Assembly (NCBI GenBank): GCA_010909165.1
Contig: MU008152.1
Span: forward strand, 496,001 to 560,000
Direction of reading: 5' to 3'
DNA: 64,000 nt
DNA from: Anthoceros angustus
Lineage: Eukaryota; Plantae; Anthocerotophyta
Shown here: piece by piece, positions 19,775 through 52,850 of the stretch
Position numbering within the stretch: the first letter of the stretch is position 1
Layout of the letters: each line of letters begins with the position of its first letter
Position numbers and translations under genes: made by a program
Notes under the pieces: model-generated
The model's database searches: none
Told to the model about the DNA's origin: nothing
Seen by the model: only the letters and a program-made list of their open reading frames with translations

Positions 19775-19816
<42 letters not shown>

Positions 19817-23783: not shown

Positions 23784-23819
<36 letters not shown>

Positions 23820-23856
23820 TCCTGCGCTTGCTGCTGCATTGGTCGCTCCATGTCAC
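23241..23856 (-). pseudogene. unknown repeated family, copy A2 (frameshifted duplicate of A1)
   Basis: Matches 19215-19850 with several 1-3 bp deletions. Confidence 0.75.
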
Positions 23857-28101: not shown

Positions 28102-28229
28102 GGCGTCGATCGCCCTCGAGAGGGCGATCTCCCAGGCCGACATCTTCAAAACACCACTGGTAGATAGGCTGTTTCATAACGCAGGATGCCACGTCTTCAG
28201 CACCAGTAGTTGTAGGCCTTTTCATATCC

Positions 28230-28510
28230 AGACCACGACATTCTCGGAGCGTACTTAGTTTCAAAACCACGACATTCTAGGAGCGTAATTAAGTTTCAAA
28301 ACCACGACATTCAAAGAGTGGAGGCAAGTTTCAAAACCACGACATTCTAAGAGCGTAGGTAAGTTTCAAAACCACGACATTCTAACACCGTAGGTAAGTT
28401 CTCAAAACCACGACATTCTCGGAGCGTAGGTAAGTTTCAAAACCACGACATTCTCGGAGCGTAGGTAGTTTAAAAACCACGACATTCTCGGAGCGTAGGT
28501 AGTTTCAAAA
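28230..28510. repeat. ~35-bp minisatellite x8
   Basis: TTTCAAAACCACGACATTCTCGGAGCGTAGGTAAG units. The variable part stays homologous between units, so there are no unique spacers. Confidence 0.92.
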
Positions 28511-30869: not shown

Positions 30870-30930
30870 GTACACTGGAATCCTCCGTGTACACTGGAAT
30901 CCTCCGGGTACACTGGAATCCTCCGGGTAC
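30870..30930. repeat. 19-bp tandem repeat x3 in the LINE 3' region
   Basis: GTACACTGGAATCCTCCGK repeated. Confidence 0.85.
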
Positions 30931-32907
30931 TGGGTACACCCTCCATCTGGGAATCCACCCTCAATGGAGCAGCACAGACCCAGGCCCCTCGCCCACAACA
31001 CAGCAAGCAAGCTTGAAGCCTGGCAAGCAGCGGGCTTTCTCACCACCGTCAGACCTCTCACATGGAACTTCCATTGTCGGCTCTGATTGCTCCCTCACAG
31101 AGCGCCAGCAGGAGGATTTTCAAGGCCTTCTCAACAAAGGCAGGGACTTGGCGAAATTTGGTGAGACTGGAGGCGCCTCCGTCAGGCACCTCATTCTGCG
31201 CAAATGCGTGCTGGGGGGGTTTTTCTTTGGTCCTAGGGCCTGAGATCATGTGAGATGCCCCTTTTCTAGAGGCTCTGTTGTCCCCCTCCTGCTTCCTGCC
31301 TGCCCTTCCCGCCCGGAGCCTTTTCTGCGCTCCTTCGCGTGTCTCCTCGTTTCTAGCACGATCTTGTTTCTTCCGATTCTACAAAGCTCGGGTTCTCTAA
31401 AAAAAGAATAGAAATCTAACAAACTATTCTGCTATGTTGATGCTTCTAAGCACGTCCTGGAACATCACACTGTCCTCCCCCTCGTAATCGCTGAACTGGA
31501 TGACTTCTCCCCTGCCTATTGTTGATACCGCGGATCTCAAACAGCCCTTTCAGCTGATCAGCACAGCCCGCAACAACCTTGCAAGTGATGTGCACAAGTT
31601 CGAGGACAAGCTTAAGACCTCAGCCATTACAGCCTAAAATCACCACTCACCAGTGCACTGGGTGCTGTGCCGAGGAGGTATTCCTGCTCTCCTACACTTG
31701 AAATGCACCTTCAGCGAGGGCCTGCAGGACAGATCTACACCCTTAGATTGCTATGCTGCACCTACAACTAGTTAGGATTGCAGCTGAGAACTTGACACAT
31801 ATCACTGGAGAGCACTGACAGACAAGAGGTGTGTTTTGGACCTGGATTTGCAGGAGGTGCAAGCTAATCTTGATACAGATGCCTCGATGACTGCCAAAAC
31901 ATCTGTCAGGTGCTCCCAAACAGATGAGCATCCCATAGAGAGAGCCAAAAGAGAATATTACGCTTCAGTCACAGCTCCCACGAACTCCATGGAAATGAAT
32001 ACCTTGCCTGGTTCGCCCAAGCTAGCCAAGCTGAAGCCCGTCCATCAGCTCAGTGTGCCTGTCCGTAACATTGGTGTGGTACAACTCCAGATCGAAAAAC
32101 ATGAGCCGTGCACTGAAACGGCCAGAGCGGACAATAAGGGAGCGGCGAAGACCACTCACATGTGCATAGCCATCTAGCCCCTCCGGCAGGGCAACATTAG
32201 GTTAGAACTCCTTGCTCCCAAGTCCCAAACCGAGAGCTTGAGCTAGAACCTGCTGCCAGGGTGTCCAGTGGATATCAGTTTTAACAGTGGACAGAGGCCT
32301 GGATCCAAGAAACCGCCACACTGAGCGAATTTTGTAAAAGCGATCAGAATCGCTGTTGATCCATGGGCGGTGGCCTGTGCCAAAGTGCGCGAGTCTGACA
32401 GCAGAACATGAGCACGTGCGTAAGGCAAGAAAAGGATAATGTATTGATAGTCTAGAGAAATACTTATAGTGTCTCCTAGAAAGCGGTTTAATAACCGTCC
32501 ATATGTGAAAATACAAAACTACCTAATAGCCGTTGGTAACAGCCCAACTAAAGTAGCATGACTTAGCTGTTAGGCTATTCCCAATACTCCCACTTAGTTG
32601 CAGGATTTCCAAAGTAGGAAGCTAGACTGAAATATCCGTCCTTCGCATGCAAGCTGGACGCGTACAAATGATGAACTGAGAAAACACATGCCAAACGAGG
32701 TTGTGTTCCAGCTCACTTCTGTTCTCTTATGCTCCAACTCTCCTTGAGATCGGCTCTCATGGCTACCTTCAGTGCCATAGAGTTGGTCCTCCACTTGATC
32801 ACATGTGAGTCTTCACTCTCTACTTCCTCCGCAGCTGGCTGTCCTCTACAGCTGGATCCCGGTGCACAAATTCTCGGAGCGCCAATCTTGTCTTCACGCC
32901 TTGCACT

Positions 32908-33500
32908 GTGCAGCATCGAACATCGTCTCCTTCTACTCTCCAAGCTCGGCTCCTCTTCCAAAGGACAGCTCTAAGGCCAAGGCTTCTCGCAGGCTCCAGA
33001 ACTTTGAAGGTGTTCGCAGCTCCATCATCAGAGTTCCACAAGATGAGCTGCAAGGACACTGAGACGAAGAGCAAGAGAGGAGTAACAAGTGTGGCTTTGC
33101 AGCCCACACCTGAAGAGATGCAAGCATACATGAAAGTGCCTCTCCCTGTGGATTCAGACGACGAAGTCTACATGGAAGAGGAATGAGGCTACAGACCTTC
33201 TACAGGTGTAAAGGGTGAGAGAAAGACAGCGCAGAGAAATGAAGGAGTGGAAGACACTAAGACTCCTAAGAAAGGAAAGGAGAAACCTGCACCTCACGTG
33301 ACAGGAAGTGGGATACAAGTGCTATATGGGTGTAAGTACTTCACTATTGGAAAGTATGCATGAAACCTGACAGAGTTGTGATGCTAACTACTGCTGTGGT
33401 TGCTGCAGCCCTGAATGAAGAATTCACGAAGTCTGACAAGGCAAGAGAAGACCTGAAGAAAACATTCATCAAACAGGGCAAGCTCCCACTGGGGAATTAG
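32908..33500 (+). pseudogene. antisense spliced accessory ORF in the copia 1 3' region
   Basis: The frame of ORF 32908..33186 continues past one TGA to donor T|GTAAGT (33331/33332). Intron has a CTAAC branch point; acceptor CTGCAG| at 33408. Last exon SLNEEFTKSDKAREDLKKTFIKQGKLPLGN stops at 33500, 12 bp from the pol stop. The 5' end is unresolved. Confidence 0.6.
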
Positions 33501-34804
33501 AAGCAGCAAACTCTAGTGGGCAGTGCCCTTCACAGCTACAGCTGGGATGTCACTAATGCCAGCAGATGCAGTATGCTTTTCATGAACAGGTTTAGAAAGA
33601 GCCTTCGTGAGAAGGTCAGAAATGTTATCTTCAGTAGGTACATAAGACACTGTTACCTCACCAGACTCGGCAGCTTGCCTGATAAAGTGGTGACTTATCT
33701 CAATATGTTTGGATCGTGCGTGAAAAACAGGATTCTTGCTCAGTGCGATAGCTGATTGGTTGTCACACCACAAAGGTGTTGCACCTGGCTGCAGTTGTCG
33801 AAGCTCCTTCATAAAACTCCGAATCCATATAACCTCCTTAGCAGCTTGTGTCATGGCTGCATATTCTGCCTCAGTAGAGGACAGACATATAGTTGAAAGC
33901 TTCTTGCTACTCCATGAAACAGCAGAGGTACCCAGAAAGGTGCAATAAGCAGCAACTGATTTCCTAGTATCAGGATCCCCAGCCCAATCGGCATCGCAAT
34001 AAGCTGTGAGATCCAGGCCTGTCTTACACTTTGTAAACCGAAGACCTTTCCTTGATGTCCCTTGCAGATATCTAAAAATCCGTTTGACAGCAGTCCAGTG
34101 TCAAGGACCAGGGTTCTCTAAGAACTGACTTACAACTCCCACTGCCCGGGTAATGTCCATTCGGGTCCAGCTGGAGAGATAAATGAGAGAACCTACTGCC
34201 TGCCTATAAGGGGTCCTGGACATAGCTAGTTTTTCCTCCTCTGTAACAGGACACTGCTCTAAGGAGAGTTTCTCACCTAAAGACATGGGTGTCCCTACAG
34301 GCTTCGCATCTTGCATGTTGAAGCGCTGTAGCAGCTGATGCACAAAGTGCTCTTGATGTATATCAATCGTGCCATCAGCTCTATTGAAGTGAAACTGAAC
34401 ACCCAGGGAAAAAGTGAGTTCTCCTAAGTCTGTCATCTCAAATTTAGAAAGGAGGATAAGCTTGATGCGGGCCATAAGGGTAGCAGAGTTACTAAACAGA
34501 AAATTGTCATCAACATAGACGGTAAGAATCAAGAAATCTGTCCCGTCCCACATGATATAGACACTGGTGTCTGCATCAAGGCAAGTAAAGCCTAATTCCA
34601 ATAGTAACTTGTGGAATACTTCATACCAAGCACGGGATGCTTGTTTCAGACCATAAAGTGTTTTAAGCAGCTTACACACCTTGTCCTCGTTGATGATGTA
34701 ACCCTCTGGCTGACACATATAGATATCTTCCTCCAGAAGGCCATTCAGAAAGGCTGTTTTAACATCCAGTTGGTGCACAAGGAGATTGTAATGGACAGCT
34801 AGGG

Positions 34805-36865
34805 CTAATAGGATCCTGACAGAGGTGGACTTAACGACCGGAGCAAAGTTTCGTTGAAGTCTAGTCCAAGAATCTGGCTGTAGCCCTTAGCAACGAGGCG
34901 AGCCTTGTATCTACCAACAGATCCATCAGTATTCAGCTTCTTCTTGAAGACCCACTTACAAGCTACTGGCTTTCTACCAGGAGGGAGATCTACAAGCTTC
35001 CAAGTTTTGTTCTGAATGAGAGAATTGTATTCGGAGTCTATAGCAGCTTGCCAAAAGGGAGCCTCAGGGCCTTCTAAGGCTTCTTTGTAAGTGGCTGGTT
35101 CTCCTAAGGAGGAAGAAACACTAAACACAGCTGCAGGAGACATACCAGAGGTTGCTAGACTTGCCCAATGATATTGAGGATCTTGCCACTCATACATATG
35201 GCGACGAATTCGGGTAGAACGGCGAGGAGGAGAATCTTCTTCGGAATCAGACTCTTCAACTTGGACATCTACAGGCTCAGCCAGGTCAGCATCACCATTG
35301 ACAGGTGTACCTGAAGTTTCATCATTATGGCCTGGAGATGGTGGAGGTGTGAGATTCTCAAAGTCACTGTTGCCAGCAGGAATTGGAGGAGTCTGTGTTG
35401 CTGGAGCTGCCCCCCCTTGATCCGAAGAAGAGTCATCCTCATCATCAAAGAAACTCGGCTCGTCAGTATCATCAGGGAGAGAATCCTCAACACCAGTGAT
35501 GGAAGCAGGCACACGAGTGGAATCCGGGTGCAAAGTAGCAGCATGTCGGCGAAGTAAGACAGCCTCATGAAAAATCACACTTCGGGACAAAGTAAGCTGC
35601 CTAGTGACAAGGTTGAAAAGTTTGTATCCCTTCACCTCTTCTGAATAGCCGACAAAAACATGACGAGATGCCTTGGGATCAAGCTTGGAGCGCAGAGCTG
35701 GTGGAACAAGGGCATAAGCTGGTGACCCAAAGATGCGCAGATGCCGAACTCGAGGCTTCCTGCCAGTCCATCGCTCATAGGGAGTAATGGAACCAAGTTC
35801 CTTGGTGGGCAGGCGATTCTGAACATAGTTGGCTGCCACCAAAGCCTCAGCCCAATACCCACGGGTGAGTCCAGCAAAGGTGAGAGAAGCTAAAGTGGCT
35901 TCTTGCAAAGTTCTGTTTTTGCGCTCTGAAAAAGCATTCTGCTCTGGAGTATATGGAACTGTGAACTGATGAAGAATACCTTCCTTCTCACAGAAGGCAG
36001 CAAATGCTTGGCTGGTGTACTCACCCCCATTATCGGTTCGAAGGATGCGCACCTTGCTTGAAGTCTGTCTTTGGGCAAACTGAACATAGGACTTGAAACA
36101 ATCAAGTGCTTCACTCTTGTGCCGAAGCAAGTACACCACACAATACCGACTCCACTCGTCGATAAATGTGAGAAAGTAATCTGCCCCTCCAAACGAGCTA
36201 GTGGACATAGGGCCGCAGATATCACTATGAACGGTGTGGAGCAACCCATCAGCACGGCTAAGAGCCTTATCCGAGAAAGGAAGTGAGTGGGCCTTACTAA
36301 GTTGGCAAGCCTCACAGAAGGCATGTTTGTCAAAGGAAAAATTCAAAGGCTCCCTGTAACTCTCACCTTTTACTAACATACCCAGACGCTGGAAGTTGAC
36401 ATGCCCTAGGCGACAATGCCACAGTTGTGTTGCAGGGATCTCTGTGGCATGTGCTGACTGGATAGAACCCAAAACTGTCTTGACATTCAAGAGGTACAGA
36501 TCATGGAAAGGAGACCCTGAAAAGAGATCTAGACCTGACCTGGTACTGGTGACGTAGCACCCTTGATGATCGAAACACACTTTGCAACTGTGTTCCTGTG
36601 AGAGTTTCAAGACAGACATAAGATTCTTAGTCATAGATGGGACATAGAGCACGTCTGTAAGAGTGAGGTTGGAAGAATCAGGCAAAGTTATGACAACTGA
36701 TCCCGAACCCTTGATAGAAAGCCCACTGTCATCCCCTAGCAGCACAAACTGCTTAGTTTCAATAGCTGGAGTAAAAGACGAAAAAGCACGTCTATGAAAG
36801 CAAATGTGGCTAGTTGCTCCAGAATCTAAAAACCAAGTATCAGGATGAACTTGTGTAGATGACAA
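34805..36865 (-). CDS. pol: copia 1 protease-integrase-RT N-terminus
   Basis: [42 protein letters not shown]; 686 aa. Confidence 0.93.
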   Translation of the reverse strand: MSSTQVHPDTWFLDSGATSHICFHRRAFSSFTPAIETKQFVLLGDDSGLSIKGSGSVVITLPDSSNLTLTDVLYVPSMTKNLMSVLKLSQEHSCKVCFDHQGCYVTSTRSGLDLFSGSPFHDLYLLNVKTVLGSIQSAHATEIPATQLWHCRLGHVNFQRLGMLVKGESYREPLNFSFDKHAFCEACQLSKAHSLPFSDKALSRADGLLHTVHSDICGPMSTSSFGGADYFLTFIDEWSRYCVVYLLRHKSEALDCFKSYVQFAQRQTSSKVRILRTDNGGEYTSQAFAAFCEKEGILHQFTVPYTPEQNAFSERKNRTLQEATLASLTFAGLTRGYWAEALVAANYVQNRLPTKELGSITPYERWTGRKPRVRHLRIFGSPAYALVPPALRSKLDPKASRHVFVGYSEEVKGYKLFNLVTRQLTLSRSVIFHEAVLLRRHAATLHPDSTRVPASITGVEDSLPDDTDEPSFFDDEDDSSSDQGGAAPATQTPPIPAGNSDFENLTPPPSPGHNDETSGTPVNGDADLAEPVDVQVEESDSEEDSPPRRSTRIRRHMYEWQDPQYHWASLATSGMSPAAVFSVSSSLGEPATYKEALEGPEAPFWQAAIDSEYNSLIQNKTWKLVDLPPGRKPVACKWVFKKKLNTDGSVGRYKARLVAKGYSQILGLDFNETLLRSLSPPLSGSY

Positions 36866-36886
36866 GCAAACTGCTAGGATAGTGGA

Positions 36887-37943
36887 CTACTTAGCCTTGC
36901 TGACGGTGACGTTGCTTTCAGGAGGATGATCTCGCTGAGGTTCTCCTCCGTTCTTCTTGCGACAGTCCCGTTCGTAGTGCCCAGGCATTTTGCACCAATT
37001 GCAAACAATCGTCTTGTTGTTGTTATTGGCAGCTGTGCGTGGTGGCTGTGTGTAGGAACCTCGTCCTCTGCCCCTTCCACGAAAACCTCCACGTCCTCTT
37101 GAGGTGAATAGCACTCTCGTATTGCTAGAAGTAGAACCCTTTTGCTTGCTAAAGCTCCGAGTGCGCTCCTCAGAGATAAGGGCTCCAATAACATCCTCAA
37201 GAGTTATCTTGGGTGTTTGACCAGAAGCTGTCGCCTTCACAGCAGAGTTGATTGTGGCATTCTGGCTGGCCACAAAGTATTGATAACTCTCTGGAAGTGA
37301 AGCTAAAAGGCTAATAGCTGCTTGAACTTCTGACAGCACAGTGCCACAAAAAGCAAGATTAGCTCGTGATGTGCGAAACTTGTTGATGTAGGCCTCAACA
37401 GGCTCATTGTCTCGCATCCTCAAGTTGAAAAAGTCTCTGTGGGCATGCACAAGAGAAGCTGAGCTCTTGTCCTGATAGATAGACTGGAAGACTTCCCACA
37501 CTGCTGTGGAAGTTTTGGCTCCTATTGTATGAGGCATCATGGTTTTATCTAAGGCAGCAATGAGAATAGAGCGAGCACGACGATCCTTACGCTCCCAATC
37601 TAGGATCCTGCGCACTTCTAGGTAAGACCTTGCTGCCGCCCCACCAGACATCACCATGCTCCTCAAACATTTGAGTTAGCCTCATGACCCGTATATTATA
37701 ACATGCATTGAACCTATCCTTGTCCTTGAATTCTATCTTCAAGGAGTTGTGGCCATTTGTGCCATGTTGACAGAGCAGCCTTAGGAGACTATTCAAGACT
37801 AACTGAAGTTGACGCTGTCTATCTATCTGACGTAAATTCTCTGGGGAGAAATCCCAAGGAGAATATGTGGAAGCATCAGCAAAGAAGAATGAAATGTCAT
37901 CAACGAACTCATCATCTGAACCTGAGCTTTCTGACATAAACAA
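36887..37943 (-). pseudogene. gag: copia 1 gag (frameshifted)
   Basis: FKDKDRFNA..Y, WERKDRRARSIL, CNWCKMPGHYERDC zinc knuckle; split across ORFs 37587..37943 and 36887..37666. Confidence 0.9.
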
Positions 37944-39024
37944 GGGATATGCTCACAGCATGGTGCGTTGCACCTGTGGACGTCTCTGAGAAGACTTGAC
38001 GAGCATAGGGGTAGGCTCCAACTTCGAAAGCTCCTCACACAACTGATTGAGGTCGTGAATGCCGTCTGTAAGCTTCTCAATGAGAATCCACGTGATCTCA
38101 CAGGGTTCTGGCTGAAAGTTCATCCTCCCACAACCGCTCAAGGCCGATGTGTGTCTTGGAGTCGTGGATGTCCGAGGAAAATAGGCACTTTGTGTCACAC
38201 GGGTGAGTGCTGGTGTGACAACCGAAAAGTGTTGACGGCGATCGCGATTCCTCCTTGTTGGTGCTACCTCCCTTCTCTCCGCAGATCTGCAATCAGGGCA
38301 AACCACCTGATGCTCTGAACAAGCAAAGGAAGAGCGCTTCACTGGTTTGCTGAGAAATCTCGGAGGAGGAACTGGATTCCCTCCGAGGGTCTTGGCATCG
38401 TGACTCCAGGGTGCCTAAATCAGGGTGAATAGGCATCCATCGTGCACGCCCAAACCACGCTCTGATACCATAAAAGCGATGTAATCAGCCATGTGATCCA
38501 TGGGCTGTGGCTCAAAAGCAGTGCGAGTCTCGACAAAGAACATGAGCGGCAAGTGGAGCAAGAAAAGGATAATGTATTGATAGTCTAGAGAAATACTTAT
38601 AGTGTCTCCTAGAAAGCGGTTTAATAACTGTCCATATGTGAAAATACATAACTACTAATAGGAAGCAGTTTCAACTAAAGTAGCATGACTTAGAGGCTAT
38701 TCCCAATATTTTGCCTTGGCAGGATTTGGTGGAGGAGTTCGGCTCCTGCAAGGCAGATATTAAAGCGGATTGGAGTGCGAAGAGAGCCACACCGCGCTAG
38801 GAGGAGAACGAGCATGAGTGCAAAAACAAGTGACTGCCAGTTACATGTAGTTTGTTATACATCAGAGGTCCCTGGTAACAAGTTAGGCTTGAGAGTAACT
38901 GCCTATGAGTCTAGCATGATAACCCTATCAGCATTGTTATTAGGGTTATGATATCTCCTTTACTCCCTCTTAGACGAGATAGGCAAAAAGGGATAAAAGG
39001 GAAAAAGGACACCACGGGTTCAAG

Positions 39025-39960
39025 GTGAACGCGCGGGCATCATTCTACGCTCAAAACTGGCCTACCGGGCTTCTGCAAGGATGCCTATGCCACAAACTTC
39101 ACCGCTGGGATTATTGGCCCATTGTCGCTTATAAGATGGCGCTCCCTCTCTCCACGTTCCAATGCATGAGAGTGGTGGCGACTGCTAAAGTCCTCATCTT
39201 CTGCCTGATCCTCCTTTTGGTGCGCCTCTGGAAATCCTGCTCCCACTGCTGCTTCCTCATGGGCACTATGTCGAAGGGCCTTGAGTGTCTCCACTGTGGA
39301 AAACGCTGGCTCCCAGCTTCATCATTCACACCAAGGCAGTGGATTCTGCACTCCATTAGCTGCGAGGCCCTACCTGTAGACATGAGCAGAAGCAAGACCA
39401 AGGAAGAAGAGGAATTTGTGCTGGAGGCGAGGACAATGGCTGATGCCATGTTGCCTAACCCTCGTGACAGGATAGAGATCTGGCACACTCCCAAATGTGT
39501 GGCCTTCCCTGTGACTGAGGCAGACAAAAGGCTGAGGATCACCAAGGAGGAGTACAAAGACCTTATGAAGAGAGCCTTCCCTCGAGAATATGGAGAACAT
39601 GACTACTACTATCACCATGTGGTCAGCAAGGAGAGCATTGTGCGGGCAGAGAAGAAATAAGCCAGCATACTGCTAAGAGCTACTATGATACCGGGAGAAA
39701 CTCCCTCTGCTGATGAGAATTCTGAACAAGGTAACAAAAAGAGGAAGGAGAACCCGACGATTACATGTAAGTTGTGCTTCATCCACTCGCTTCTCTTCCC
39801 TTCTGTCTGCACAGTACCAATCCAAAAGGTCTGAATCTAACCAACCCTATATACTTTGCTGTCTACAGCTCTGCTAGAGGAAACAAAGAAGATAGCAGAG
39901 TTGCTGGAGAAGCTTAAACGGGAACAGAGACTGTGGTTACTCAAGGATTTAGGACGATAG
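39025..39960 (+). pseudogene. antisense spliced accessory ORF in the copia 2 3' region
   Basis: The 211-aa ORF 39025..39660 continues in frame past one TAA to donor T|GTAAGT (39766/39767). Intron has CTAAC; acceptor CTACAG| at 39868. Last exon SLLEETKKIAELLEKLKREQRLWLLKDLGR stops at 39960. Confidence 0.65.
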
Positions 39961-42410
39961 TGTGCACACATCGCCAGGTTTTACCTTTAACCGAGAAATG
40001 CACTTATGTAGGCCACCAATAAGCATGTCTCGCAAAGTGCTGGCTTGACAAGGTTGGTTAGCAAATCAGCTATGTTTTCCCCTATTGGGATGTAGCTAAC
40101 CACTACTTCTCCTGTATCAGTAGCTTGCCTAATAAAGTGATGGGTAATCTCAACGTGCTTACTTCTTGCATGAAATACCGGATTTCGAGATAGAGCTATC
40201 GCAGATTGGTTGTCACACCAAAGTTGAGCTGGTCCAGGTGCTAGCTGCTGCAATCCCTTGAGAAAAGAACGGATCCAAATTACTTCCGCTTGCCCCATAT
40301 TCCCCGCCTCAATGATAGAGGCGAGTTGTAAGCTTCTTGCTACTCCAGGATATTGAGGAACCACCAAGGATGTTGCAGTATGCTGCCACACTACGACGTG
40401 TGTCTGGATCACCAGCCCAATCAACGTCACAGTATGAAACCAAGTGCAATCCATCTGGTTGTCTACTATACTGCAAACCATGCCTTGCAGTGCCTTTTAA
40501 ATAACGAAAAATTCGTTTCACTGCGGTCCAATGAACCTCTCTTGGGTTCTCAAGAAACTGGGACACATTGCTAACTGCTCGGGCAATGTCTAATCTGGTC
40601 CAAGCTGCTAAGTAGATCAAGCATCCAACTGCTTGACGATAAGGACACTTACTCATCTCATCCTTGTCTCGCTATGAATCGATCTTCTTTTGACAACTTC
40701 ACCAAGGCTATGGCGGCAACAGCCTACCCTCCATGTTGAAACGCTTCAAGAGTTGCTCCACAAAGTGCTCCTGATGTATGTATATGCTGTGGCCAGAATC
40801 ACCAAACTGGAATTGAACCCCAAGTGAGAACGTAAGCTGTCCTAAATCCGTCATTTCAAAACGTGCAAGCAGAACCTTCTTAATCCTATCCATCAAAATA
40901 GCAGATGAACAGAAAAGGAAGTTGTCGTCAACATATACAGAAATTATGATGAAATCATCTTGGTCCCATAGAATATAAACAGTAGTATCAGCTGCTAAAC
41001 ATGTGAACCCAAGCTCTATCAAGAGTGCATGAAAACTTTCATTCCAGGCTCTGGATGACTGCTTAAGTCCATACAGCGTCTTAAGTAACTTACATACTTT
41101 CCTTGTGTCCTTCACATAACCCTCAGGCTGGGCCATATAAATCTCCTCTACAAGTGAACCATGCAAAAGGTCAGTTTAACGCCTGAAATATGTAATAAGC
41201 AACTATGTCACAGCTAAGGCTGCAAAATGCATGGCTTTGACGACAGGAGCAAAAGTCTCATTGTAGTCAAGGCCCTCCACTTGGCTGTAACCCTTAGCTA
41301 CCAAACGAGCTTTGTATCTTCCAACTTCTGTCTGCTCAACTTTCTAAACACCTACTTGCGTGCAATCGGTTTCCGCCAGAGGTAAATCAACCACCAAGTC
41401 TCGATGCCATGAGAGAGTTGTACTTGATTCTATGGTCGCTTACTGCTCGGCTCGTCCTGATGCCAAATAGATAAGTGGCGTTTCCCAAAGAGGAAGGAGG
41501 TGGAAAGAAGGGTTGATGAGGTTTAGGAACATGGCGAGACAGGCCAGCAACATAAGGACCAAACCATTCACTCATAGGACGTCTAGTGCGAGTAGAGCGT
41601 CTAAGGACTGGTGAAGTGTCTATGTGTTCTGGTTCAGGCTCTGTAAGGTTTGGTGGGTCAGGAGGATCAGGTTCATGATCAGGAGCCGAGACAGAATCAG
41701 ATTCGGTGGTTTCTGAAACAACAGGCAAATCTGCTGCAGGAGAGTCAACTACTAATGGGAAAGGAAACTTATCTGGAGGCTGGACAGGAGGCCAGACAGG
41801 AGGTGCTGCAGAGACGAATGGTGGTGAACTACCCCCTGAAACCGCAGAAGATGAATCTGAGTCATCCACATCAAAGACAGTAACGTCAGCTGGATCAGGA
41901 GAATCAGTAGCATCATCAACACCATGGATGGAAGGAGCTGCCAAAGAGGAATTGGGTTGGAGAATAATCTGATGTCGACAAAAAAGGGCATCCTCATTGA
42001 ATACAACACTACGGGAAAAGGAAACTTGTCGAGTCTGAGGATCAAACAACTTGTAGCCTTTAACATCATCAGAATAACCAACAAATATGCGTCTTACAGC
42101 TTTAGGATCTAACTTAGAACGCAAAGCTGGTGGGATGAGGGCATAAGCAGGAGCTCCAAATATACGAAGATGAGAAACTCGAGGTTTCTTACCAGTCCAC
42201 CTCTCATAAGGGGTCACCAGACCTAACTCCTTGGTTGGTAGGCGATTCTGAACATAGTTAGCAGCACATAAGGCTTCCGCCTAACATCCTCTTTCAAAGA
42301 AGGATAACTAGAAAGGCTGCCTCCAGAAACTTCGTTTCTTTCTCTCAGAAACGTGATTCTCCGCTTGTGTGTAGGGAACCGAAGTCAAGGCCGGACTCCT
42401 CCTCACACAA

Positions 42411-44772
42411 AACACGATAATTTTTGAAGGGGGGATACCCCTTCGCCGAGACAAGACCCCTTGTCACGAAGAACACCTTACCTAGAACAAAGATATGTGC
42501 CCTACTTTGATAATGCACACACCTTTCCGAGGTCATATCTTTGATAAAAGATGCACTTTCAAGTCTACACCCGAGAACCGGAGCATGAGGGTGTGGGCCC
42601 GCTTATGCTTTAGTAGAATGCATAGAGGGCTGCCATTTTCATATGTTTATTACAACCGAAAACTTTTACTTTCAAGTGGTGGAACACAATGAAAACAATC
42701 TGCATTAGCGGAGTCTCATTTAAGTGGTCGTGAGAACATTGCAACAAACAATCAAGGAGGAAGTGGTCATCAAGATCGACAATAGCCATTCAAGAGTGCG
42801 GCGACTCATCCATGCCTTAAACCGAGTCAAGTACCACCGCCATATTCGGAGGCGGTCCATATCCTCCGCCTCGGTTGTCGCTCTCCTCCATTGCTTGCCT
42901 TCAATAGTATCATTCTTGGGCCCGGTCCGACGGTCGATCGCCACACAAAGATCTAGGGTCTCACGACCTCATCCAAAAGGTCGCCAATCGTGGTCTTCAA
43001 CCTTCCGCACTCAATGCAACCACTTGGGCTTTAAGGCAATGCCAACGTCCTTAAAATGAACAAAGTTAGTTGCCCATGCGCCCATGCAAGCATCCTTAAA
43101 ATCAACAAAATTGAACTATTGAGGAGGCACGAGGTTTGAACACGAAACCTATTCGTTACTACACTTATTTCCCAAACACTAGACCAACAATCCATGGTTG
43201 AGTACTCTTGAGGCGCTAAATATTTATTTTTGAAGACAGGAGGAGGGCGCTGGCGCCGGCGCCCATGGGCAAGGCATGGCGTGTTAGGGGAGGGCGCGGC
43301 CGGCGCCCAAGGACGGCAGGGCGTGGGCGCCGCCGCCGGCGCCCATGGTGGTGTGCTGGGGAGGGCGCCTGCCACCCGCCCCAAGGTGGTGTGTAGGGGA
43401 GGGCGCCGGCCGGCGCCCATGGGCGGTGTTAGGGGAGGGCGCCGGCGCCCATGGGCGGTGTTAGGGGAGGGCGCCGGCGCCCATGGGTAGGGTGTAGGGG
43501 AGGGCGCCGGCCGGCCCCATGGGCAGGGAGGCGCCGCCGGCCGGCGCCCATGAGTGGCATGTCAGGGGAGGGCGCGGCCGGCGCCTCCTTAGCACCATCC
43601 TACGGTGCATACGGTGAAGCTAGGGGGGACAAGAAGGAACGTATCCTATCACCGATGGAAGGTGTGGCCCATTTGGTGAAGGGTTAAAAGATTTGCATCC
43701 ATAGGTGACTGAAGAGTATAAGTGGTGGGAAGCCTGTTGGACCGGAAGGAGATTGCTATTGTGGAGAATAACATTGGGCTAGTGCTACGTCATTCTTGGA
43801 AGTGGTTTTCACGCGAAGTGGATCATACAGACCACTTCAAGTGCGGATGAAGCTTTGCTAGATGAGGCATTATTGAGGGACCTCCCACGCGTGATATGTA
43901 TTTGGGGGCATATCAAAATGCGGAAGGCAACGGAAATGGCACGGATGAATGGGGACATAACGGAACCGAGAGGGATGTTTCGCGCAAATACGCATAACAG
44001 GCCATTCGGATTGGGAGGTCATTGACGTGAAGCTAAACGCACCACGACCTCACTTTCTTATCCACTAGTATCGGACCGAGCACATAGATGCGTATGAAGG
44101 AGATATGCAGAACACATAGTCCGCCAGAGTGGTAACCCATCCGTCCAATGCCGAGGAAAAAGGGAATAAGATCCATTACCTAAAAACATACAGGAGGTAT
44201 TTGTGAATGAAACTATCCCAGACATGGGTTTGTGTTGAACGACGGAAACATCCGTATGTGGACAAAAAGCGATAAGGGATAAGCTCATGAGTTGCGTGGC
44301 TTCATACAACCCGCGAGTGAAAGTGTCGTCAAGATAGTGATGACAATGGAGAAGTTTGGACCAAGTGATGACGATGGATTGAACTCGGGATGAGTGAAAC
44401 CGAAATCTCGCTTTTTCCGGGTCCCAGTTAATGTTGTAAGTCCTAGATGTTTCGTGTTAGGAAATACCGTCTGTGGCTTTTGTGGTGTCATAACAAAACC
44501 ACATTTCCATCCCAAAATCGAGTTTATAATGTTTGCTCAGAACGGCCTTCCTCACCGCTCCTACTTTGCATCATTTCCCTAGGTTGGAGCCACCATTGGC
44601 CACAAACATTGCTAGATGGAAAGTAGTAATTTTTCCGGTGACACCTTTTTTCGAGCTGTTTTCCTGAATGCCTTCAAAACGCTGTTTTAGGGCCCATCAA
44701 AAACCCCCTTCAGAGATTATTTGCGGAAAACCCCCTTCGAGATTATTAACCCCCTTCAAAAATTATCGTGTT
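42411..44772. mobile_element. non-autonomous DNA transposon nested in the copia 2 integrase
   Basis: Terminal inverted repeat AACACGATAATTTTTGAAGGGGG at both ends, 4-bp direct repeat ACAA at 42407-42410 and 44773-44776, subterminal AACCCCCTTC repeats at the right end. Integrase sequence resumes on both sides. Confidence 0.85.
43240..43590. repeat. GC-rich degenerate tandem block inside the nested DNA element
   Basis: Recurrent GGGGAGGGCGCCGGCGCCCATGGG units. Confidence 0.8.
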
Positions 44773-45639
44773 ACAATGATCCTCGAAAGCATTGCTGATA
44801 TACTCACCTCCATTATCTGTCCTTAAAATACGGACCTTTGAACCTGTCTGACGCTGAGCAAATGTAACATACTGCTGGAATGTGGAAAGGGCTTCACTCT
44901 TATGATGAAGGACATAAATGCAGCAGTAACGACTCCATTCGTCGATAAAGGTAATGAAGTAAGAGGCACCACCAAAAGATGCTGTTGACATGGGTCCACA
45001 TATGTCGCTGTGGATGGTATGTAACAGGCTAGTGGCTCTAGACAGGTGCTTGTCCTTGTAAGGTTGAGAAATGGCTTTGCTAGTTTGACAGGCGTCACAA
45101 AAGGCATGTTCATCAAAGGAAAAAGAAAGGGGTTCCCTAAATACCTCATTTTTAATAAGAGCATATAACTTGTGGAAGTTCACATGACCAAGTCTGCAGT
45201 GCCAGAGTTGGGTAGGTGTCAGGTGAGGGCTAGTTGCTACATGAACTGAAACTGAAGGTATGAAACTCCTAACATCCAGCAAATACAGGTCATTATAGGG
45301 AATACCAGAGAAGATTTCTGACCAGTTGCCTAACTGTGAGATAGAGCACCCTGTGTGATCAAAACACACACGACAAGCATGCTCCTGAGACAACTTAAGC
45401 ACGGACATAAGGTTCTTAGTCATGGATGGCACAAAAAGAACGCCAGACAGAATAAGAGTGGACTTTTGTGGAAGTTGGACCATGACTGAACCAGTACCTT
45501 TGATGGCTAAGCCACTGTCATCACCAAGCAAGACAAACTGTCTATCATCAGAAGCTGCTTTGAAGGTACAAAATGCTGTTTTATCAAAACAAATGTGACT
45601 AGTTGCTCTTGAGTCTAAGAACCACATGTCTGTTTGTAT

Positions 45640-47028
45640 CTAAATAGATGAAAGGAAAACAGCAAGAATGGTAGGTGCTTTGACAGTCGAGGTAGATTTG
45701 GTGGAGGCAATGTTTGATTCAGCAGGTGCTTCCCTCTTAGGCTCGCCTGCCTTCTTCTTTCTGCAATCACGCTCATAGTGACCAGGTATTTTGCACCAAT
45801 TGCAGCTAAAAGTCTTACGCTGCAAGTTGGGCTGTCGAATAGTTGATGGAGCACCTCTGCCCCTGCCTCCACGTCCATGCCAATAACCTCTGCCTCTTGA
45901 CGAGAAAAGGACTCTGTTGCTGTTGGAGATCTGACCCTTAGATTTGTTCAGGCCTCTTGTGCACTCTTCAGCTAACAATGCTCCAAAGACGTCCTCAAGT
46001 GATATATTCGGTACTCCAGCTCCAGCAGCTTGCTGTGCTGAAGCAATGATAGCATGTTGTACACTTGTGAAATGAGAAAAGTTCTCTGGCAATGATGCCA
46101 AGAATCCTGTTGCCGCCTGAACCTCTGTGAGGACTGTCCCACAATAAGCGAGGTTAGCACGTGCAGTCCTGAATTTATTTATATAAGATTCAACAGACTC
46201 ACTCTCCTTCATTCTGAGATAAAAGAAATCTCGGAATGAGTGTATCAAGGATGCTGAACTCTTGTCCTTGTAGATCTTGGTAAAATTACTCCACACAACT
46301 GCAGAGGTCACCGCATTCAAAGTGTGAGGCATCATAGTCTTATCTAGAGAAGCAATGATAATCGAACGTGCACGCCTGTCCTTCCGCTTCCAAGCTAGGA
46401 CATTGTCAGCATTCGTCTGAGTTGGGACAGGCGATTGCTCACTCCCATCAACAACTCCCATGAGTTCATTCTCCTCCAGTATTTGGGTAAGCCTCATAGA
46501 CCAGACTGAATAGTCTGTGCCATTGAAACGGTCTCGATCCTTGAAGTCAATCTTCAGGGTATCAGGAAGTGGAGCAACAGGTTGAGCCATAGCAGCAAGA
46601 GTCACGCCTGGGTTCGGAAGAGGGTTGCCAAATCCCGATCCTGTTGTGGCTCCTTGCTGCTGTTGAACACTAGTTGTCGAAGATGAGGCTCTAGAAGAGA
46701 GTCCCCATCGCCAGGCCCGATGAAGAATCATGAGTTGTGTTGGCTCTGCGTGTGCAACGTACAACAACCCAGAAGAATCAGTAAAAAGTGTTCCAGGACC
46801 CAAAGTCCCAAAGATGCCGGTGTAGCCAAGGAAAGGAGTGACGCCTGGTTGGAAGAATCGGTCCTCAGGAAGAACCGGTCTTCGATGCCGCCGCTCCGGA
46901 GATGTAGGTTCCCTCGGCTCTTCAAGCGGTGTCTCAGCAGTGTCACGGGATGGGGTGACAAGGCCGGTAGCACTCAAATCAAGATCATCATCATCATCAT
47001 CGAAGTCGGGTTGCATCCCTACAGACAA
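45640..47028 (-). CDS. gag: copia 2 gag (462-aa ORF)
   Basis: FKDRDRFNGTDYSVWS, WKRKDRRARSII, CNWCKIPGHYERDC. Confidence 0.9.
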   Translation of the reverse strand: MSVGMQPDFDDDDDDLDLSATGLVTPSRDTAETPLEEPREPTSPERRHRRPVLPEDRFFQPGVTPFLGYTGIFGTLGPGTLFTDSSGLLYVAHAEPTQLMILHRAWRWGLSSRASSSTTSVQQQQGATTGSGFGNPLPNPGVTLAAMAQPVAPLPDTLKIDFKDRDRFNGTDYSVWSMRLTQILEENELMGVVDGSEQSPVPTQTNADNVLAWKRKDRRARSIIIASLDKTMMPHTLNAVTSAVVWSNFTKIYKDKSSASLIHSFRDFFYLRMKESESVESYINKFRTARANLAYCGTVLTEVQAATGFLASLPENFSHFTSVQHAIIASAQQAAGAGVPNISLEDVFGALLAEECTRGLNKSKGQISNSNRVLFSSRGRGYWHGRGGRGRGAPSTIRQPNLQRKTFSCNWCKIPGHYERDCRKKKAGEPKREAPAESNIASTKSTSTVKAPTILAVFLSSI

Positions 47029-48768
47029 GCTATCAGCAGTGATGGCGGGGATTCAAATCTGACGAAGTCCTCCTCCTCATCTTGCCAGCCTCAAGAGCTT
47101 TGTGTGTCAGGCAATTTAAGTGAATTTGTCGGATGGATTCACTTAAGCCGTCGAAAAGATCTTGCAGGCGCTCGACCTTGGAGTGTAGGTCCTGAATCTC
47201 CCTGCCTTCTTGTAGTCGGGGTCTGAGAGCAGAATCTGTGCGCGGTTGGTGATGTGAGAGCCTCTTCTAGAACAAGGTATGTCTGGGATGGTCTCTCGTC
47301 GGTGCGAGGTGACAGGAGATTGCAGAGAGGTAAGGTATTCCTCTTCACGACAATCCAGCAGCAACTCCTCCGACTCGGGTGTGGGAGTTCTCCTCACTGC
47401 TCCCCCACGGATCACAGATCACAACCCTACACTTCGGCATGATTCCCTCCGTGGCATCGACCTAAGATTGCCATTGCTCGCAAGTCAGATCGGGATGCAT
47501 ACAACCAGGCTCTGATACCATAAAGCGGATTGGAGTGCGGAGAGAGCCACACCGCGCTAGGAGGGGAACGAGCATGAGTGCAAAAACAAGTGACGGTTAC
47601 ATTTACAGAGTTTGTTACATACTGTAGAGGTCCCCAGGTAACGGTTAGGCTTGAGAGTAACTGCCTATGAGTCTAGCATGATAACCCTATCAGCATTGTT
47701 ATCAGGGTTATGATATCTCCTTTAGATATAAACCTCAAAAAGGCTCGCACGATAGGGCGCACATTCCTGAAAAGCCTGAGCAACAAGGTGTATCCCGCAG
47801 AAGGCCGGAGCATCGTGATGGCTGCCTTTGCGAGAGGCGCCATCGCCACGCTGAGGCCCCAAGTAGACCGGGCCACATTCGCCGGCATGGCCTGTGAGTA
47901 GAATGGAGGAGAACCAGCAGTGATTGACGCCTCCTTTGATAGCATCAACGGTGTTTGTTTGTACCGATAGTGAAGCCATGCATATGACTGGGTCTCACGG
48001 TCCTGTGCCCGTCCTCCGTCCCGCTGGTCCTCTGCGCCACCGTCCTCTAGTCCTCTGGTCCTCTGAGGCACGCAGTTGAGGACGAGACCGCTGACGAACA
48101 TGTATGCTTGAGTCCCCGGCCGCCCGGCCTCGACGAGGCTCTTGAAGCCGACGCTAGGCTCGCTTTGCGGGCCCGATATCCTCGCACTCGGTCCCCGAAT
48201 CGCCAGGCCAAGCAATCGGATTCCTTGCCTGTGGGACATCCACCGCATTTCTTCGCTCAAGTCCACCGGTGGACTCGGTCCAAATGCAGTCAGCTCATGA
48301 TTCCTCGATGGCGGCCTATGATGATAATCATGGACATCGTATGGACTCTCATGAGTTTGTCCAAGCATCCAAGCCATTCCAACACTCTTTCAGCCCCTTG
48401 ACCCTCCCCCACCGCCTCCGCTCACTATCCTCGATTATCAAAAGAAATCTCCTTTTCTTACGTCCGTGATATGACCTTCCAAGTTAAACATAATCCTTGA
48501 GAGCTCCAACAATCTTGGGTCTCCCTTAGACTCCGCTAACACTGCGATCTCGTCTCGATTCATGACATGCTGCGCATTGCATGGCGATTCACTAGCAAAG
48601 TACATGAAGACTAAAATTTGAGCATCCATGGAAAGGGATTAACTCACCGTATGCCAGTTCGTGACTAGACTGACGCTGTACATGTACAGCCTTGAGTCCC
48701 CGGCCCGGGCCTCGACGAGGCTTAAGTCAGAAGGCCACCGCTTGTGGGCCCGATATCCTCAAACCCTG

Positions 48769-49783
48769 TAGCTGAGCGCGGCGAGGAAAAGAGTAATTTA
48801 TTGGTGAACAAGATGAGGTGAAGTACACAATCGCGCGTAGTTGCAATCGTCGATGTTTTACTGCTGCCTGCTACCATCAACTACCGGGGTATGAGCCCGA
48901 TCTAATCAAACTCGAACCGTGCCCTAGCTGATCCGTGAGCGCCCAGCGCCACTCTGCTCCAACACTCCCCCTCGCTCAGGATCTACCTGTGTCTTCAGCT
49001 TGAAACCGATAGCGTCCGTGCCCAATGCGCGCAGCTGGTTGTGAGCCTATCGTCCAGTACCTGAGCTGGAGGAGAAATGCCGGAGTTGCACTCCCCCTCA
49101 ATTTGAAATTGAGGAAGCTTGACGTCTTCCTCCCAAGTAGGCCTCCTTACTTGTGAGTCCGATGCCGACAACGTGCTTCTTGTGCAGGGGCTTGGGAAGC
49201 TTGCACACCTTGCTCGGATCTTTCACGAATCCTGGTGGTTGTGACATGTCCCTTCCGTAGTGACTTAACCCCCTAGACGGTAACTAGATTACGGTGGTTA
49301 CGCGTTAACCGTCTGCTGATTGCCACCGCCCCGAGACCTTCCAAGAACGATGCTCGAGCTATGCTGTCTCTGCACTTTATGCAGATTGCTGATCTTGGAG
49401 GCGTCGCATTGCTCGCTGGCGCGAAAGCCGCCGGAGTGCGGCGCCGAGGCATCGCGCAGTCCACAAGATCGTTGAATCCCATTGCGGTTGGTTCGTTCGA
49501 GCTCCATCCCGCGAGATCGATGCAGACCACGCGCGCGGAGCCGAGGCGATGCCGAAGAACGGGGAAGGCTGTCGCTCTGATACCATAAAGCGGAGCGCGA
49601 TGCAGGAAAGAGTAATTTATTGGTGAACAAGATGAGCTTTGGCACAATCAAGTGCGTGTAGTTGCAATCGTCTCAACTGCTTTGCTACGGTTCGCTGCTA
49701 CCATCAACTACCGGGTACGAGCCCGATCTAATCAAACTCAACGGCCTTCTGCCGATCCGTGAGCGCCAGCCACTCGCTCAACA
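48769..49783 (-). mobile_element. TRIM-like non-autonomous LTR element, copy 1
   Basis: LTRs 48769-48964 and 49586-49783 (minus strand TGTTG...CCGCTTTA), PBS 49574-49585, PPT GAGGGGGAG at 48965-48973, internal RNase H remnant KLPKPLHKKHV. Flanks CCCTG/CCCGG are an imperfect TSD. Confidence 0.85.
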
Positions 49784-51844: not shown

Positions 51845-52850
51845 TAAAGCTGAGCGATGGCAGGAAAAGAGTAATTTATTGGTGAACAAGATGAGGTGAA
51901 GTACACAATCGCGCGTAGTTGCAATCGTCGATGTTTTGTCATGTCTGCTACCATCAACTACCGGGGGTATGAGCCCGATCTAATCAAACTCGAACTGCCC
52001 TAGCCGATCCGTGAGCGCCAGCCACTCGCTCCAACACTCCCCTCGCTCGTGATCTACCCGTGTCCCCGCCTTGAAACCGCAGCGTCCTGCGCCAATGCGC
52101 TGCACTTGTTGTGAGCCTATCGTCCAAGACTGGAGGAGAAATGCCGAGTTGCACTCCCTCAATTTGAAATTGAGGAAGCTTGACGCCTCCCAAGTAGGCC
52201 TCCTTACTTGTGGAGTCCGGCGTACAACGTGCTTCTTGTGCAGGGCTTGGGAAGCTTGCACACCTTGCTCGGATCTTCACGAATCTCGGTGGTTGTGACA
52301 CGTCCTTCCAGTAGTGACTTAACCCCTAGACGGTAACTAGATTACGGGTGGTTACTGCATTATTAACCATGCTTGGTGAACAAGGCATTGCCGGGCGTCG
52401 TCTGAGACCTTCCAAGAACGATGCTCGAGCTAGCCTTGTCTCGCACTTTATGCATTGTCGATCTTGAGGCGTCAGCTCAAGCGCGAAAGCCGGAGCGCGC
52501 CGAGGCATCGCGCAGTCCACAAGATCGTTGAATCCCATTGCGGTTGGTTCGTTCGAGCTCCATCCCGCGAGATCGATGCAGACCACGTGCGCGGAGCCGA
52601 GGTGATGCCGAAGAATGGGGAAGGCTGTCGCTCTGATACCATAAAGCGGAGCGCGATGCAGAGGAAAAGAGTAATTTATTGGTGAACAAGATGAGCTTAA
52701 GTACACAATCGCGCGTAGTTGCAATCGTCTCGAACTGCTTTGCTACGGGTTTGCCTCTGCTACCATCAACTACCGGGCAATGGTGCCCGATCTAATCAAA
52801 CTCGAACTGCCCTGCCGATCCGTGAGCGCCAGCCGCCACTCGCTCCAACA
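51845..52850 (-). mobile_element. TRIM-like non-autonomous LTR element, copy 2
   Basis: LTRs 51845-52036 and 52642-52850, PBS 52630-52641, PPT at 52037 onward; same site as copy 1 within the duplicated unit. Confidence 0.85.

Follow-up and report, generated by a model that had tools for sequence, protein, structure and literature searches.

Few tethering mechanisms are known in the Ty1/copia superfamily. In yeasts, tethered integration is known for Ty1 (Pol III), Ty5 (Sir4), and Tf1 (Sap1), while the rDNA-specific retroelements R1 and R2 are multicopy safe-harbour specialists, cutting at a single precise sequence that occurs many times over. In Arabidopsis, the integration of ATCOPIA elements is tethered via H2A.Z (PMC6668482). 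Moreover, plant LTR retrotransposons show non-random nesting together with a weak preference for palindromes (Jedlicka et al. 2019, PMC6911290), and a palindromic target, ANGTT-TSD-AACNT, is given for the rice copia element Tos17 in work cited there. Closely spaced double insertions have also been described in Drosophila, where tandem TE dimers originate mostly from insertion-site preference (McGurk and Barbash 2018, PMC5932611).

The locus considered here lies in a stretch of 64,000 nucleotides from Anthoceros angustus (hereafter the window, to which all positions refer) and consists of two copia elements, elements 1 and 2, inserted into one fragment of a repeated orphan gene. With R1 and R2 it has in common the idea of a target present in many copies in which insertions are tolerated, but seven of the eight core copies are empty here and the two sites differ. 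Tethering as in Ty1, Ty5, Tf1, and ATCOPIA is how real targeting would work, through repeated hits in a narrow interval beside a bound factor; unlike in those elements, no tethering motif, factor, or genome-wide bias is shown at this locus. The nested or clustered LTR elements of plants (PMC6911290) are similar in their non-random insertion in or near older repeats, their 5-bp duplications with AT-rich centres, and their weak association with palindromes, whereas here the second element stands beside the first, at 42 bp, and the host is a fragment of an orphan gene that is not a TE. As in the Drosophila dimers (PMC5932611), two insertions occurred at nearly the same site and in the same orientation; however, those dimers involve one family and an identical site, while elements 1 and 2 are 58-70% identical in amino acids in their main sense-frame pol matches and used different pentamers 42 bp apart. 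The likeness to Tos17 lies in the preference of a copia integrase for symmetric target DNA, but neither site fits the Tos17 consensus in the form cited in PMC6911290, and the symmetry is found between the two sites instead of around each duplication.

Element 1 (32335-38708, minus strand) is a degenerate Ty1/copia LTR retrotransposon delimited by a 3' LTR at 32335-32586 and a 5' LTR at 38471-38708, whose identity of 82% is patchy. It reaches 98% in the central part and falls to about 70% on either side, and transitions and transversions are about equally frequent (ratio near 1). The element has a perfect target duplication of 5 bp, TTTTG, on its two sides (32330-32334 and 38709-38713). The primer binding site TGGTATCAGAGC (38459-38470, minus strand), a tRNA-iMet complement, adjoins the 5' LTR, and the polypurine tract AAGTGGGAG (32587-32595) adjoins the 3' LTR. 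Pfam domains on the minus strand comprise gag (36887-37666), Pol_BBD, pre-integrase, rve, SH3, and the start of RVT_2 (within 34805-36865), and RVT_2 (34101-34778), in a coding region broken into at least three ORFs.

Element 2 (38761-47724, minus strand), also a degenerate Ty1/copia LTR retrotransposon, is bounded by a 3' LTR at 38761-38962 and a 5' LTR at 47521-47724, which are 88-91% identical, and by a perfect 5-bp duplication, GATAT, at 38756-38760 and 47725-47729. The same tRNA-iMet complement adjoins its 5' LTR (47509-47520, minus strand), and the polypurine tract AAGAGGGAG (38963-38971) adjoins its 3' LTR. On the minus strand, Pfam recognizes gag (45640-47028), Pol_BBD, pre-integrase, and rve (within 44746-45627), SH3 (41387-42217), and RVT_2 (40708-41166). 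The integrase is split by a nested, non-autonomous terminal-inverted-repeat element of 2362 bp (42411-44772) with perfect 23-bp terminal inverted repeats and ACAA at both flanks, in which a search for ORFs with a Pfam-like product found none and which is the source of the gap of ~2.4 kb in the alignment between the two elements.

In both elements the order of Pfam domains on the minus strand is Retrotran_gag_2, Pol_BBD, gag_pre-integrs, rve, SH3_retrovirus, and RVT_2, with the integrase before RT. The canonical TG...CA termini are absent from both, the sense LTRs reading TATTGG...GCTTTTA in element 1 and TAAAGG...CGCTTTA in element 2; since such ends are common but not obligatory, membership in Ty1/copia rests on the LTR pair, the 5-bp target duplication, the primer site (0.46 chance matches expected for the motif), the polypurine tract, and the domain order, all of which are present in both elements. 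Neither element retains an intact polyprotein, the coding sequence being split into several ORFs in each, and the best copia protein matches to these elements are 45% identical and belong to mixed taxa. Elements 1 and 2 belong to Ty1/copia and inserted separately and independently of each other, both on the minus strand. All elements of the window are degenerate with broken ORFs. Divergence between LTRs ranges from 0.11 to 0.30 (K2P), and an insertion order based on it was rejected as unreliable on account of the uneven divergence in element 1. No solo LTRs or extra copies of the LTR types of elements 1 and 2 and of the TRIM described below were found in the window.

The host sequence is preserved in three pieces on the plus strand. 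The left piece (32290-32334) comprises 15 codons, DRGLDPRNRHTERIL, of which the final five bases (TTTTG) form the left copy of the duplication around element 1, and is 91% identical to two paralogs, A1 (19698-19654) and B1 (23712-23668). The spacer (38714-38755), of 42 bp or 14 codons, PWQDLVEEFGSCKA, lies between the TTTTG and GATAT duplications, and the segment 38709-38760 that includes it is 96% identical to A1 (19658-19607). The right piece (47725-47901) begins with GATAT, the right duplication of element 2, continues as DINLKKARTIGRTFL...GMACE, and ends at a stop codon; it is 86% identical to A1 (19609-19439), with 81% amino-acid identity by tblastn to A1 residues 106-162. All three pieces share one plus frame (DRGLDPRNRHTERIL / PWQDLVEEFGSCKA / DINLKK...), which matches the intact 361-aa ORF of A1 and to which both elements are antisense. 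This continuity was judged from the separate pieces and the natural paralog.

The paralogs A1 (19439-19698, minus strand, within the intact ORF at 18838-19923) and B1 (23456-23712, minus strand) are uninterrupted and provide two empty-site references. Both are colinear with the host (19698-19439 and 23712-23456) across the two insertion sites, with 85-96% identity, and the empty site is thus directly seen. In total, seven other core copies in the window (A1, A2, B1, B2, E, F, and G) have no interruption at the corresponding position. The host itself is a fragment of ~263 bp of the family core only, with family similarity extending from 32290 to about 47891. This similarity begins abruptly at 32290, 45 bp from element 1, which constitutes a third, unexplained breakpoint; this boundary revealed neither an LTR nor a terminal inverted repeat nor poly(A), and the ORFs to its left have no Pfam match. 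An earlier, sequence-only reading had proposed two independent copia insertions in the same orientation, 14 codons apart, in a family-core frame that continues across them; the LTRs, the duplications, and the empty paralogs bear out the former, and the single frame of the three pieces, matching the A1 ORF, the latter. Within the extent that it gave, 32290-47901, element 2 ends at 47724 and positions 47725-47901 are host sequence up to the stop codon. The host is core sequence, as had been claimed, but only as the short fragment and not as a full copy.

The family is represented by at least eight copies, in both orientations, within 64 kb, and accounts for 32% of the local non-element DNA of the window. 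It is weakly constrained, with a dN/dS of 0.5 in the core and 0.9 in the tail, and mostly pseudogenised. The family has no match in Pfam, its best match among PDB sequences has an E value of 0.19, and a Foldseek search of its AlphaFold model (pLDDT 79.9) against PDB and BFVD gave a best E above 1; a word-index search with the 361-aa ORF retrieved no homologs. As a by-product, the locus has yielded an orphan helical protein domain with a confidently predicted fold and without assigned relatives in Pfam, PDB, or BFVD.

With slightly better than even confidence, we attribute the double insertion to ordinary integration into a dead orphan-gene fragment in a transposon-rich region and not to recognition of the family. 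Two related but distinct Ty1/copia elements would have integrated independently, by means of an ordinary integrase making 5-bp staggered cuts at AT-rich pentamers, into a dead copy of a locally amplified orphan gene that had been reduced to a fragment beforehand, in a region that is rich in transposons and rearranged. The closeness of both elements would then reflect a locus tolerant of insertions, and later deletions may have pared the host flanks until about 263 bp were left. If local structure had any influence, it would have been no more than a weak preference, both sites being situated at the borders of an inverted repeat. This explanation is favoured by the several kinds of elements in the window, all degenerate, which also include a third copia of a different lineage (45-4309), a LINE remnant with zf-RVT (30330-31016), and a gypsy element (62845-63633), and by a host fragment that is cut at both ends. 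The weak constraint on the family and its widespread pseudogenisation also favour it, as do the uninterrupted core copies, the family's large share of the local DNA, and the non-random nesting already known from plants (PMC6911290). The points against it are the shared orientation, the strong intervening inverted repeat, the third breakpoint at 32290, the Drosophila precedent for site preference behind close double insertions (PMC5932611), and the spacing: for three random uniform insertions in the window, the nominal probability that two of them fall within 47 bp (with the 42-bp spacer) is about 0.006, and that one 263-bp fragment is hit twice is rarer still. No tRNA or other Pol III gene was found near the insertions by Rfam. 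We infer that family-specific targeting is absent, and the locus reads as a crowded transposon graveyard, at most with a local hot spot; as it stands, it represents a well-documented close double insertion in a transposon-rich region.

Such a hot spot, owed to whichever insertion came first or to the structure of the DNA or chromatin at the locus and not to the family, is a possible but doubtful alternative, suggested by the fact that both insertions flank the inverted repeat. The second element could have been drawn to a position just upstream of the 5' LTR of the first, or to the inverted-repeat edges, where a bound dimer or bent DNA might favour strand transfer. The segment 38709-38760 is an imperfect inverted repeat, GCCTTGGCAGGA...TCCTGCAAGGC, with a 12-bp stem and a DNA fold of -10.8 kcal/mol (z -3.74), a value as good as which was found in none of 200 shuffles, and both target duplications are near-symmetric around it, at 22-25 nt from its centre. 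Moreover, element 2 has the orientation of element 1 and lies 47 bp past the edge of that element's 5' LTR, and one copy took both insertions when seven other core copies could have been hit. Nevertheless, 1.5-2% of the 52-nt windows of this sequence fold equally strongly, the inverted repeat is also present in A1 and B1, which stay empty, the argument relies on a single pair of insertions, and the insertion order is uncertain, because the LTR divergence of element 1 is not clock-like.

Targeting of the family itself is unlikely. According to this proposal, the copia lineage and a TRIM that it mobilises would use the repeated family as a safe harbour of many copies, recognised via its sequence or a tethering factor. 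The TRIM-like element concerned (48769-49783, minus strand) lies in family unit E and has LTRs of about 197 bp with 75-90% identity, an interior of about 610 bp in which no ORF of at least 150 aa was found, a primer binding site (49574-49585), a polypurine tract, GAGGGGGAG, that adjoins the 3' LTR, and a target duplication, CCCTG/CCCGG, that matches at four of five positions. A second TRIM copy (51845-52851, in unit F) derives from a later tandem duplication. All three LTR elements with the (C)GCTTT(T)A LTR end and the primer site lie in family units, elements 1 and 2 in the conserved core and only 42 bp apart. The unrelated copia of the window, in whose one visible flank no family sequence appears, can be counted both for a preference of this lineage and against targeting of the family in general. 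However, the probability that three of three insertions fall in the family by chance goes no lower than about 0.03, because the family fills so much of the local DNA. Furthermore, the TRIM sits beyond the core, some 650 bp away from the core sites, and is sense to its host ORF, in the opposite relative orientation, and no similarity of its flanks to the family core above that of shuffled controls was found. Its LTR bodies are unrelated to the LTRs of elements 1 and 2, with which it has in common about 8 bases of LTR end and the universal primer site. The TRIM that the sequence-only reading had called related and placed in family copy D is outside the core, and its relationship is limited to those two features. 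A likeness of the TRIM flank to the site of element 2, 'GATAT..CCTCAAA', noticed by eye, was dropped, as the flank homology was no better than in shuffles.

Independent insertions at the equivalent site in different family copies were not seen, both hits being in one copy while the seven others are empty. Both polyproteins contain only standard copia domains, with no chromodomain, MBD, or tethering motif detected, although short motifs in a disordered integrase tail would escape such detection. An exhaustive profile search of 1.8 billion representative proteins retrieved a sole distant homolog of the family, P0121 (E 4.7e-5), and its gene adjoins a copia, also in antisense. When the relatives of this protein (P0122-P0129) and 26 loci were inspected, copia was adjacent only at this one locus (L001), and four other loci with a family homolog have no adjacent copia. 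L001 was rejected as support for an association between copia and the family: its copia is no closer to elements 1 and 2 than the unrelated copia of the window is (27-43% identity) and falls outside their lineage, and no LTR lies at the junction with the family gene, where internal sequence meets internal sequence. In a metagenome scan, the motif formed by the LTR end and the primer site was found at 73 loci, all of them remote copia (at most 47% identity, except for one stretch of 55 residues with 55%), and the family was present in none of them. It is improbable that a copia lineage with non-canonical LTR ends, and a TRIM that shares its LTR terminus, prefers inverted-repeat edges inside a repeated orphan gene as a sequence- or factor-directed safe harbour. 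To our knowledge, such a strategy has not yet been described for Ty1/copia elements and, if true, homing of copia to a multicopy gene family would represent a new mode of target selection for the superfamily and a natural safe-harbour integrase.

Finally, it is very unlikely that the family is itself mobile or a TE-derived copia partner (an accessory gene or a non-autonomous element): its copy number in both orientations and the homolog abutting copia on L001 would fit, but even at E values as high as 10 it matches no part of any of the three copia elements, which leaves the 'TE-derived partner' of the earlier reading without support, it belongs to no Pfam family, no terminal structures were found in its units, its homologs in the metagenome organism are located at a handful of distinct loci beside LysM and SET genes, and it is absent from all 73 copia-type primer-site loci.

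The idea that a repeat of 855 bp with 99% identity (7697-8550 and 21347-22201) forms the LTRs of a larger element with copy A inside was discarded, the ends of the repeat not being LTR-like. The window is also rich in tandem and segmental repeats.

To check the insertions independently, the three host pieces flanking and separating two Ty1/copia elements were aligned to the remainder of the window. The piece at 32290-32334 aligns to 19698-19654 of A1, a unit of a locally repeated gene family, that at 38709-38760 to 19658-19607, and that at 47727-47891 to 19609-19439. Together they make up one uninterrupted stretch of this paralog, and the overlaps between the alignments are exactly the two 5-bp duplications; thus, the empty site is directly observed. 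A second paralog, B1 (23712-23456), is likewise uninterrupted across both insertion sites. Read on the plus strand, the host pieces give DRGLDPRNRHTERIL, PWQDLVEEFGSCKA and DINLKKARTIGRTFL..., and the intact A1 ORF (18838-19923, minus strand, 361 aa) reads ...DRGLDPRSRYSERIVPWQDLVEEFGSCKAGINLKKARTIGRTFL... at the corresponding stretch, in agreement with the sequence-only reading that removing both elements leaves a continuous frame. The two independent, same-orientation copia insertions 42 bp apart that it had described are borne out by the distinct TTTTG and GATAT duplications and the empty paralog sites. The extent it had assigned (32290-47901) does have host sequence on both sides, but element 2 stops at 47724 and 47725-47901 is host up to the stop codon; the host is indeed conserved core, but only ~263 bp of it. 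Both elements are antisense relative to the host frame. Family similarity starts abruptly at 32290 and ends near 47891. The host fragment is truncated on both sides, its left break lying 45 bp from element 1, and a search at 32290 for a recognisable transposon end (LTR, terminal inverted repeat or poly(A)) found none.

Element 1 (32335-38708, minus strand) and element 2 (38761-47724, minus strand) are each defined by an LTR pair, a primer site, a polypurine run, a target duplication and Pfam domains, the LTRs being placed by window self-comparison and junction sequences. In element 1, the LTRs occupy 32335-32586 and 38471-38708, a 12-nt tRNA-iMet primer binding site (TGGTATCAGAGC; 38459-38470, minus strand) directly abuts the right-hand LTR, the polypurine run AAGTGGGAG (element sense) adjoins the left-hand LTR, and TTTTG stands on each flank. 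Element 2 has LTRs at 38761-38962 and 47521-47724, a primer site at 47509-47520 (minus strand), the polypurine run AAGAGGGAG and GATAT on each flank. The window contains four matches to the tRNA-iMet primer site where 0.46 would be expected. Gag, Pol_BBD, pre-integrase, integrase core, SH3-like and RVT_2 domains follow in copia order on the minus strand in both, which therefore are Ty1/copia elements in the same orientation, with a 42-bp spacer between them (38714-38755). The anatomy of both is thus borne out, more cleanly than in most calls of this kind; their coding regions are each split into several ORFs. In the main sense-frame pol matches they are 58-70% identical to each other and roughly 35-55% identical to a third copia in the window, and they are related but distinct lineages, not two copies of one element. 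In a protein search, the element 1 polyprotein found its best match at 45% identity, the named matches being a mixture of animals and plants.

In element sense, the LTR ends are not TG...CA: they are TATTGG...GCTTTTA in element 1 and TAAAGG...CGCTTTA in element 2. The element 1 LTRs (32335-32586 and 38471-38708) are 98% identical over the central ~100 bp and only ~70% to either side of it; indels occur, and the transition/transversion ratio is close to 1. Such divergence is not clock-like, and LTR-based dating is therefore unreliable. Nested inside the integrase of element 2 is a non-autonomous DNA transposon of 2362 bp (42411-44772). Its terminal inverted repeats (AACACGATAATTTTTGAAGGGGG) are 23 bp long and perfect, ACAA stands on either side of it, and inside it lie three subterminal 19-bp repeats (44702-44766) and, at ~43232-43588, a GC-rich array built of 32-36-bp units.

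The family is represented in the window by at least eight copies of a ~2-kb unit, in both orientations. A1 and A2 (19177-20001 and 20309-21176; 66% identical) form a head-to-head inverted pair with arms of ~850 bp and a spacer of ~300 bp, and B1/B2 (23231-23998 and 24305-25182) is a tandem duplicate of that whole pair at 97-98% identity. E and F are a tandem pair (89% identical), G lies at 60316-61347, and the host fragment is the eighth copy. Only A1 and B2 (24475-25572, plus strand, 365 aa) keep intact ORFs, the remaining copies carrying stops or frameshifts. Comparison of these two gives a dN/dS of 0.50 for the core and 0.91 for the tail (0.68 and 1.59 in shifted-frame controls), which indicates that any selective constraint would be weak at best. 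The family gave no match in Pfam or in a PDB sequence search, and a word-index protein search with its ORF found nothing. Only one protein, P0121 (E 4.7e-5), from a metagenome, came out of an exhaustive profile search across 1.84 billion representatives; it has in common with the family the motifs ...AYF..GLSD.GL.P... and FA.G....QV.WA.FA. The AlphaFold model of the A1 core (~110 residues; 12-sequence alignment) is confident and has six helices (mean pLDDT 79.9, pTM 0.75), and Foldseek searches of PDB and BFVD with it returned no match (best E above 1). The family is an orphan domain, predicted to be helical, with no assigned function.

On the metagenome contig that encodes P0121 (L001, 4.8 kb), a copia on the opposite strand adjoins the P0121 gene. 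There, at positions 242-1006, the homolog (plus strand) is joined to a minus-strand copia that ends abruptly where its reverse transcriptase begins, the junction running from the interior of the family gene (~residue 200 of longer relatives) to the interior of the reverse transcriptase with no LTR between. It is either a genomic rearrangement or a chimera of the metagenome assembly (~5.5x coverage), not an insertion junction. This copia shows 27-43% identity with elements 1 and 2, which does not exceed its similarity to the unrelated copia of the window. The other homologs (P0122-P0129), at about four other loci, have as neighbours a gypsy element at 3.3 kb, a LysM gene or SET-domain genes, and in no case an adjacent copia. 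As an echo of the double insertion, the copia neighbour is thus undone by the LTR-less junction, the remote copia and the copia-free other loci. Relatives of the family were found only in eukaryote-like metagenome contigs, where SET-domain ORFs are located 3 kb downstream of two paralogs (L022, L026).

The other two of the four primer sites (49574-49585 and 52630-52641) are part of a small LTR element resembling a terminal-repeat retrotransposon in miniature (TRIM), present in unit E (48769-49783; LTRs 48769-48965 and 49586-49783) and in unit F (51845-52851). Since F is a tandem duplicate of E, the two copies represent a single event. The TRIM has LTRs of ~197 bp with the ends TGTTGG...CGCTTTA (element sense), an interior of ~610 bp, a polypurine run and the target duplication CCCTG/CCCGG. 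The sequence-only reading had placed a related TRIM in a family copy; it does lie within a family unit, but its relatedness is limited to the LTR end and primer site, and it is outside the core. A 3' LTR end (C)GCTTT(T)A right before the primer binding site is common to the TRIM and both copia elements; with element 2 it has in common only the last ~8 LTR bases (CCGCTTTA) and the universal primer site, and the LTR bodies of the three show no detectable similarity. It sits between family segments equivalent to ~position 18966 of A, ~650 bp from both copia sites, and its flanks match the family core no better than shuffled sequences do. Relative to the family ORF of E it has the sense orientation, the opposite of elements 1 and 2 relative to their host frame.

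Once the four element copies are removed, 46,620 bases remain, of which 32% are family sequence. On this window baseline, three of three insertions would fall in the family with P ~0.033, and some pair among three uniform insertions would lie within 47 bp with P ~0.006, both values being post hoc and specific to this window. The third copia, which belongs to a different lineage (45-4309, plus strand, running off the window start), a LINE remnant with only a zf-RVT domain (30330-31016, plus strand) and a gypsy-type RNase H ORF (62845-63633, minus strand) together show a mixed transposon-rich region, which is also rich in tandem and segmental repeats. Given this crowding, retention bias in dead DNA and later flank deletion are plausible contributors. 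Independent insertions into a permissive, decaying locus are, by a modest preference, the explanation we favour.

A local hot spot, tied to the first element or to the inverted repeat between the insertions, is clearly less probable, though it merits consideration. The 52 nt between the target duplications (38709-38760; the same in the paralog, 19607-19658) form an imperfect inverted repeat with a 12-bp stem (GCCTTGGCAGGA / TCCTGCAAGGC) and a DNA folding energy of -10.8 kcal/mol (z -3.74), equalled in 0 of 200 shuffles and matched by only 1.5-2% of 52-nt windows of this sequence. The duplications lie at its two outer ends in near symmetry, 22-25 nt from the centre. The inverted repeat, the nearly symmetric insertions and the third breakpoint nearby, at 32290, argue for some local non-randomness.

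True targeting of the family by copia elements, the multicopy safe harbour of the sequence-only reading, is improbable: all three insertions do fall in family units, but that both copia insertions are in one copy and seven other family cores in the window are empty, two of them with 85-96% identity at the site, speaks against sequence targeting across the family. Scanning metagenomes for the LTR-end and primer-site motif yielded 73 loci (502 kb), all with only remote copia (at most 47% identity, except one 55-residue stretch at 55%) and with 0 family matches, a result that is uninformative on this lineage within its source genome. In published work, LTR elements nest non-randomly and weakly prefer palindromes (PMC6911290), two insertions come to lie close together where elements prefer certain sites (PMC5932611), and copia elements are able to follow chromatin marks (PMC6668482). 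Family targeting, even if true, would extend known behaviour and not found a new category. That the family is itself a mobile partner is the least probable reading and very doubtful, since the family resembles no part of the three copia elements of the window, which leaves the proposed TE-derived partner without sequence support.

Among the repeats of the window are an 855-bp repeat at 99% identity whose copies are 13.6 kb apart (7697-8550 and 21347-22201), a 1.19-kb and a 1.27-kb head-to-tail duplication, both at 99% (12074-14444 and 56042-58573), a 407-bp tandem array (8407-9636) that lies downstream of the third copia and is related to 5184-5499, and a 35-bp satellite at 28226-28510.
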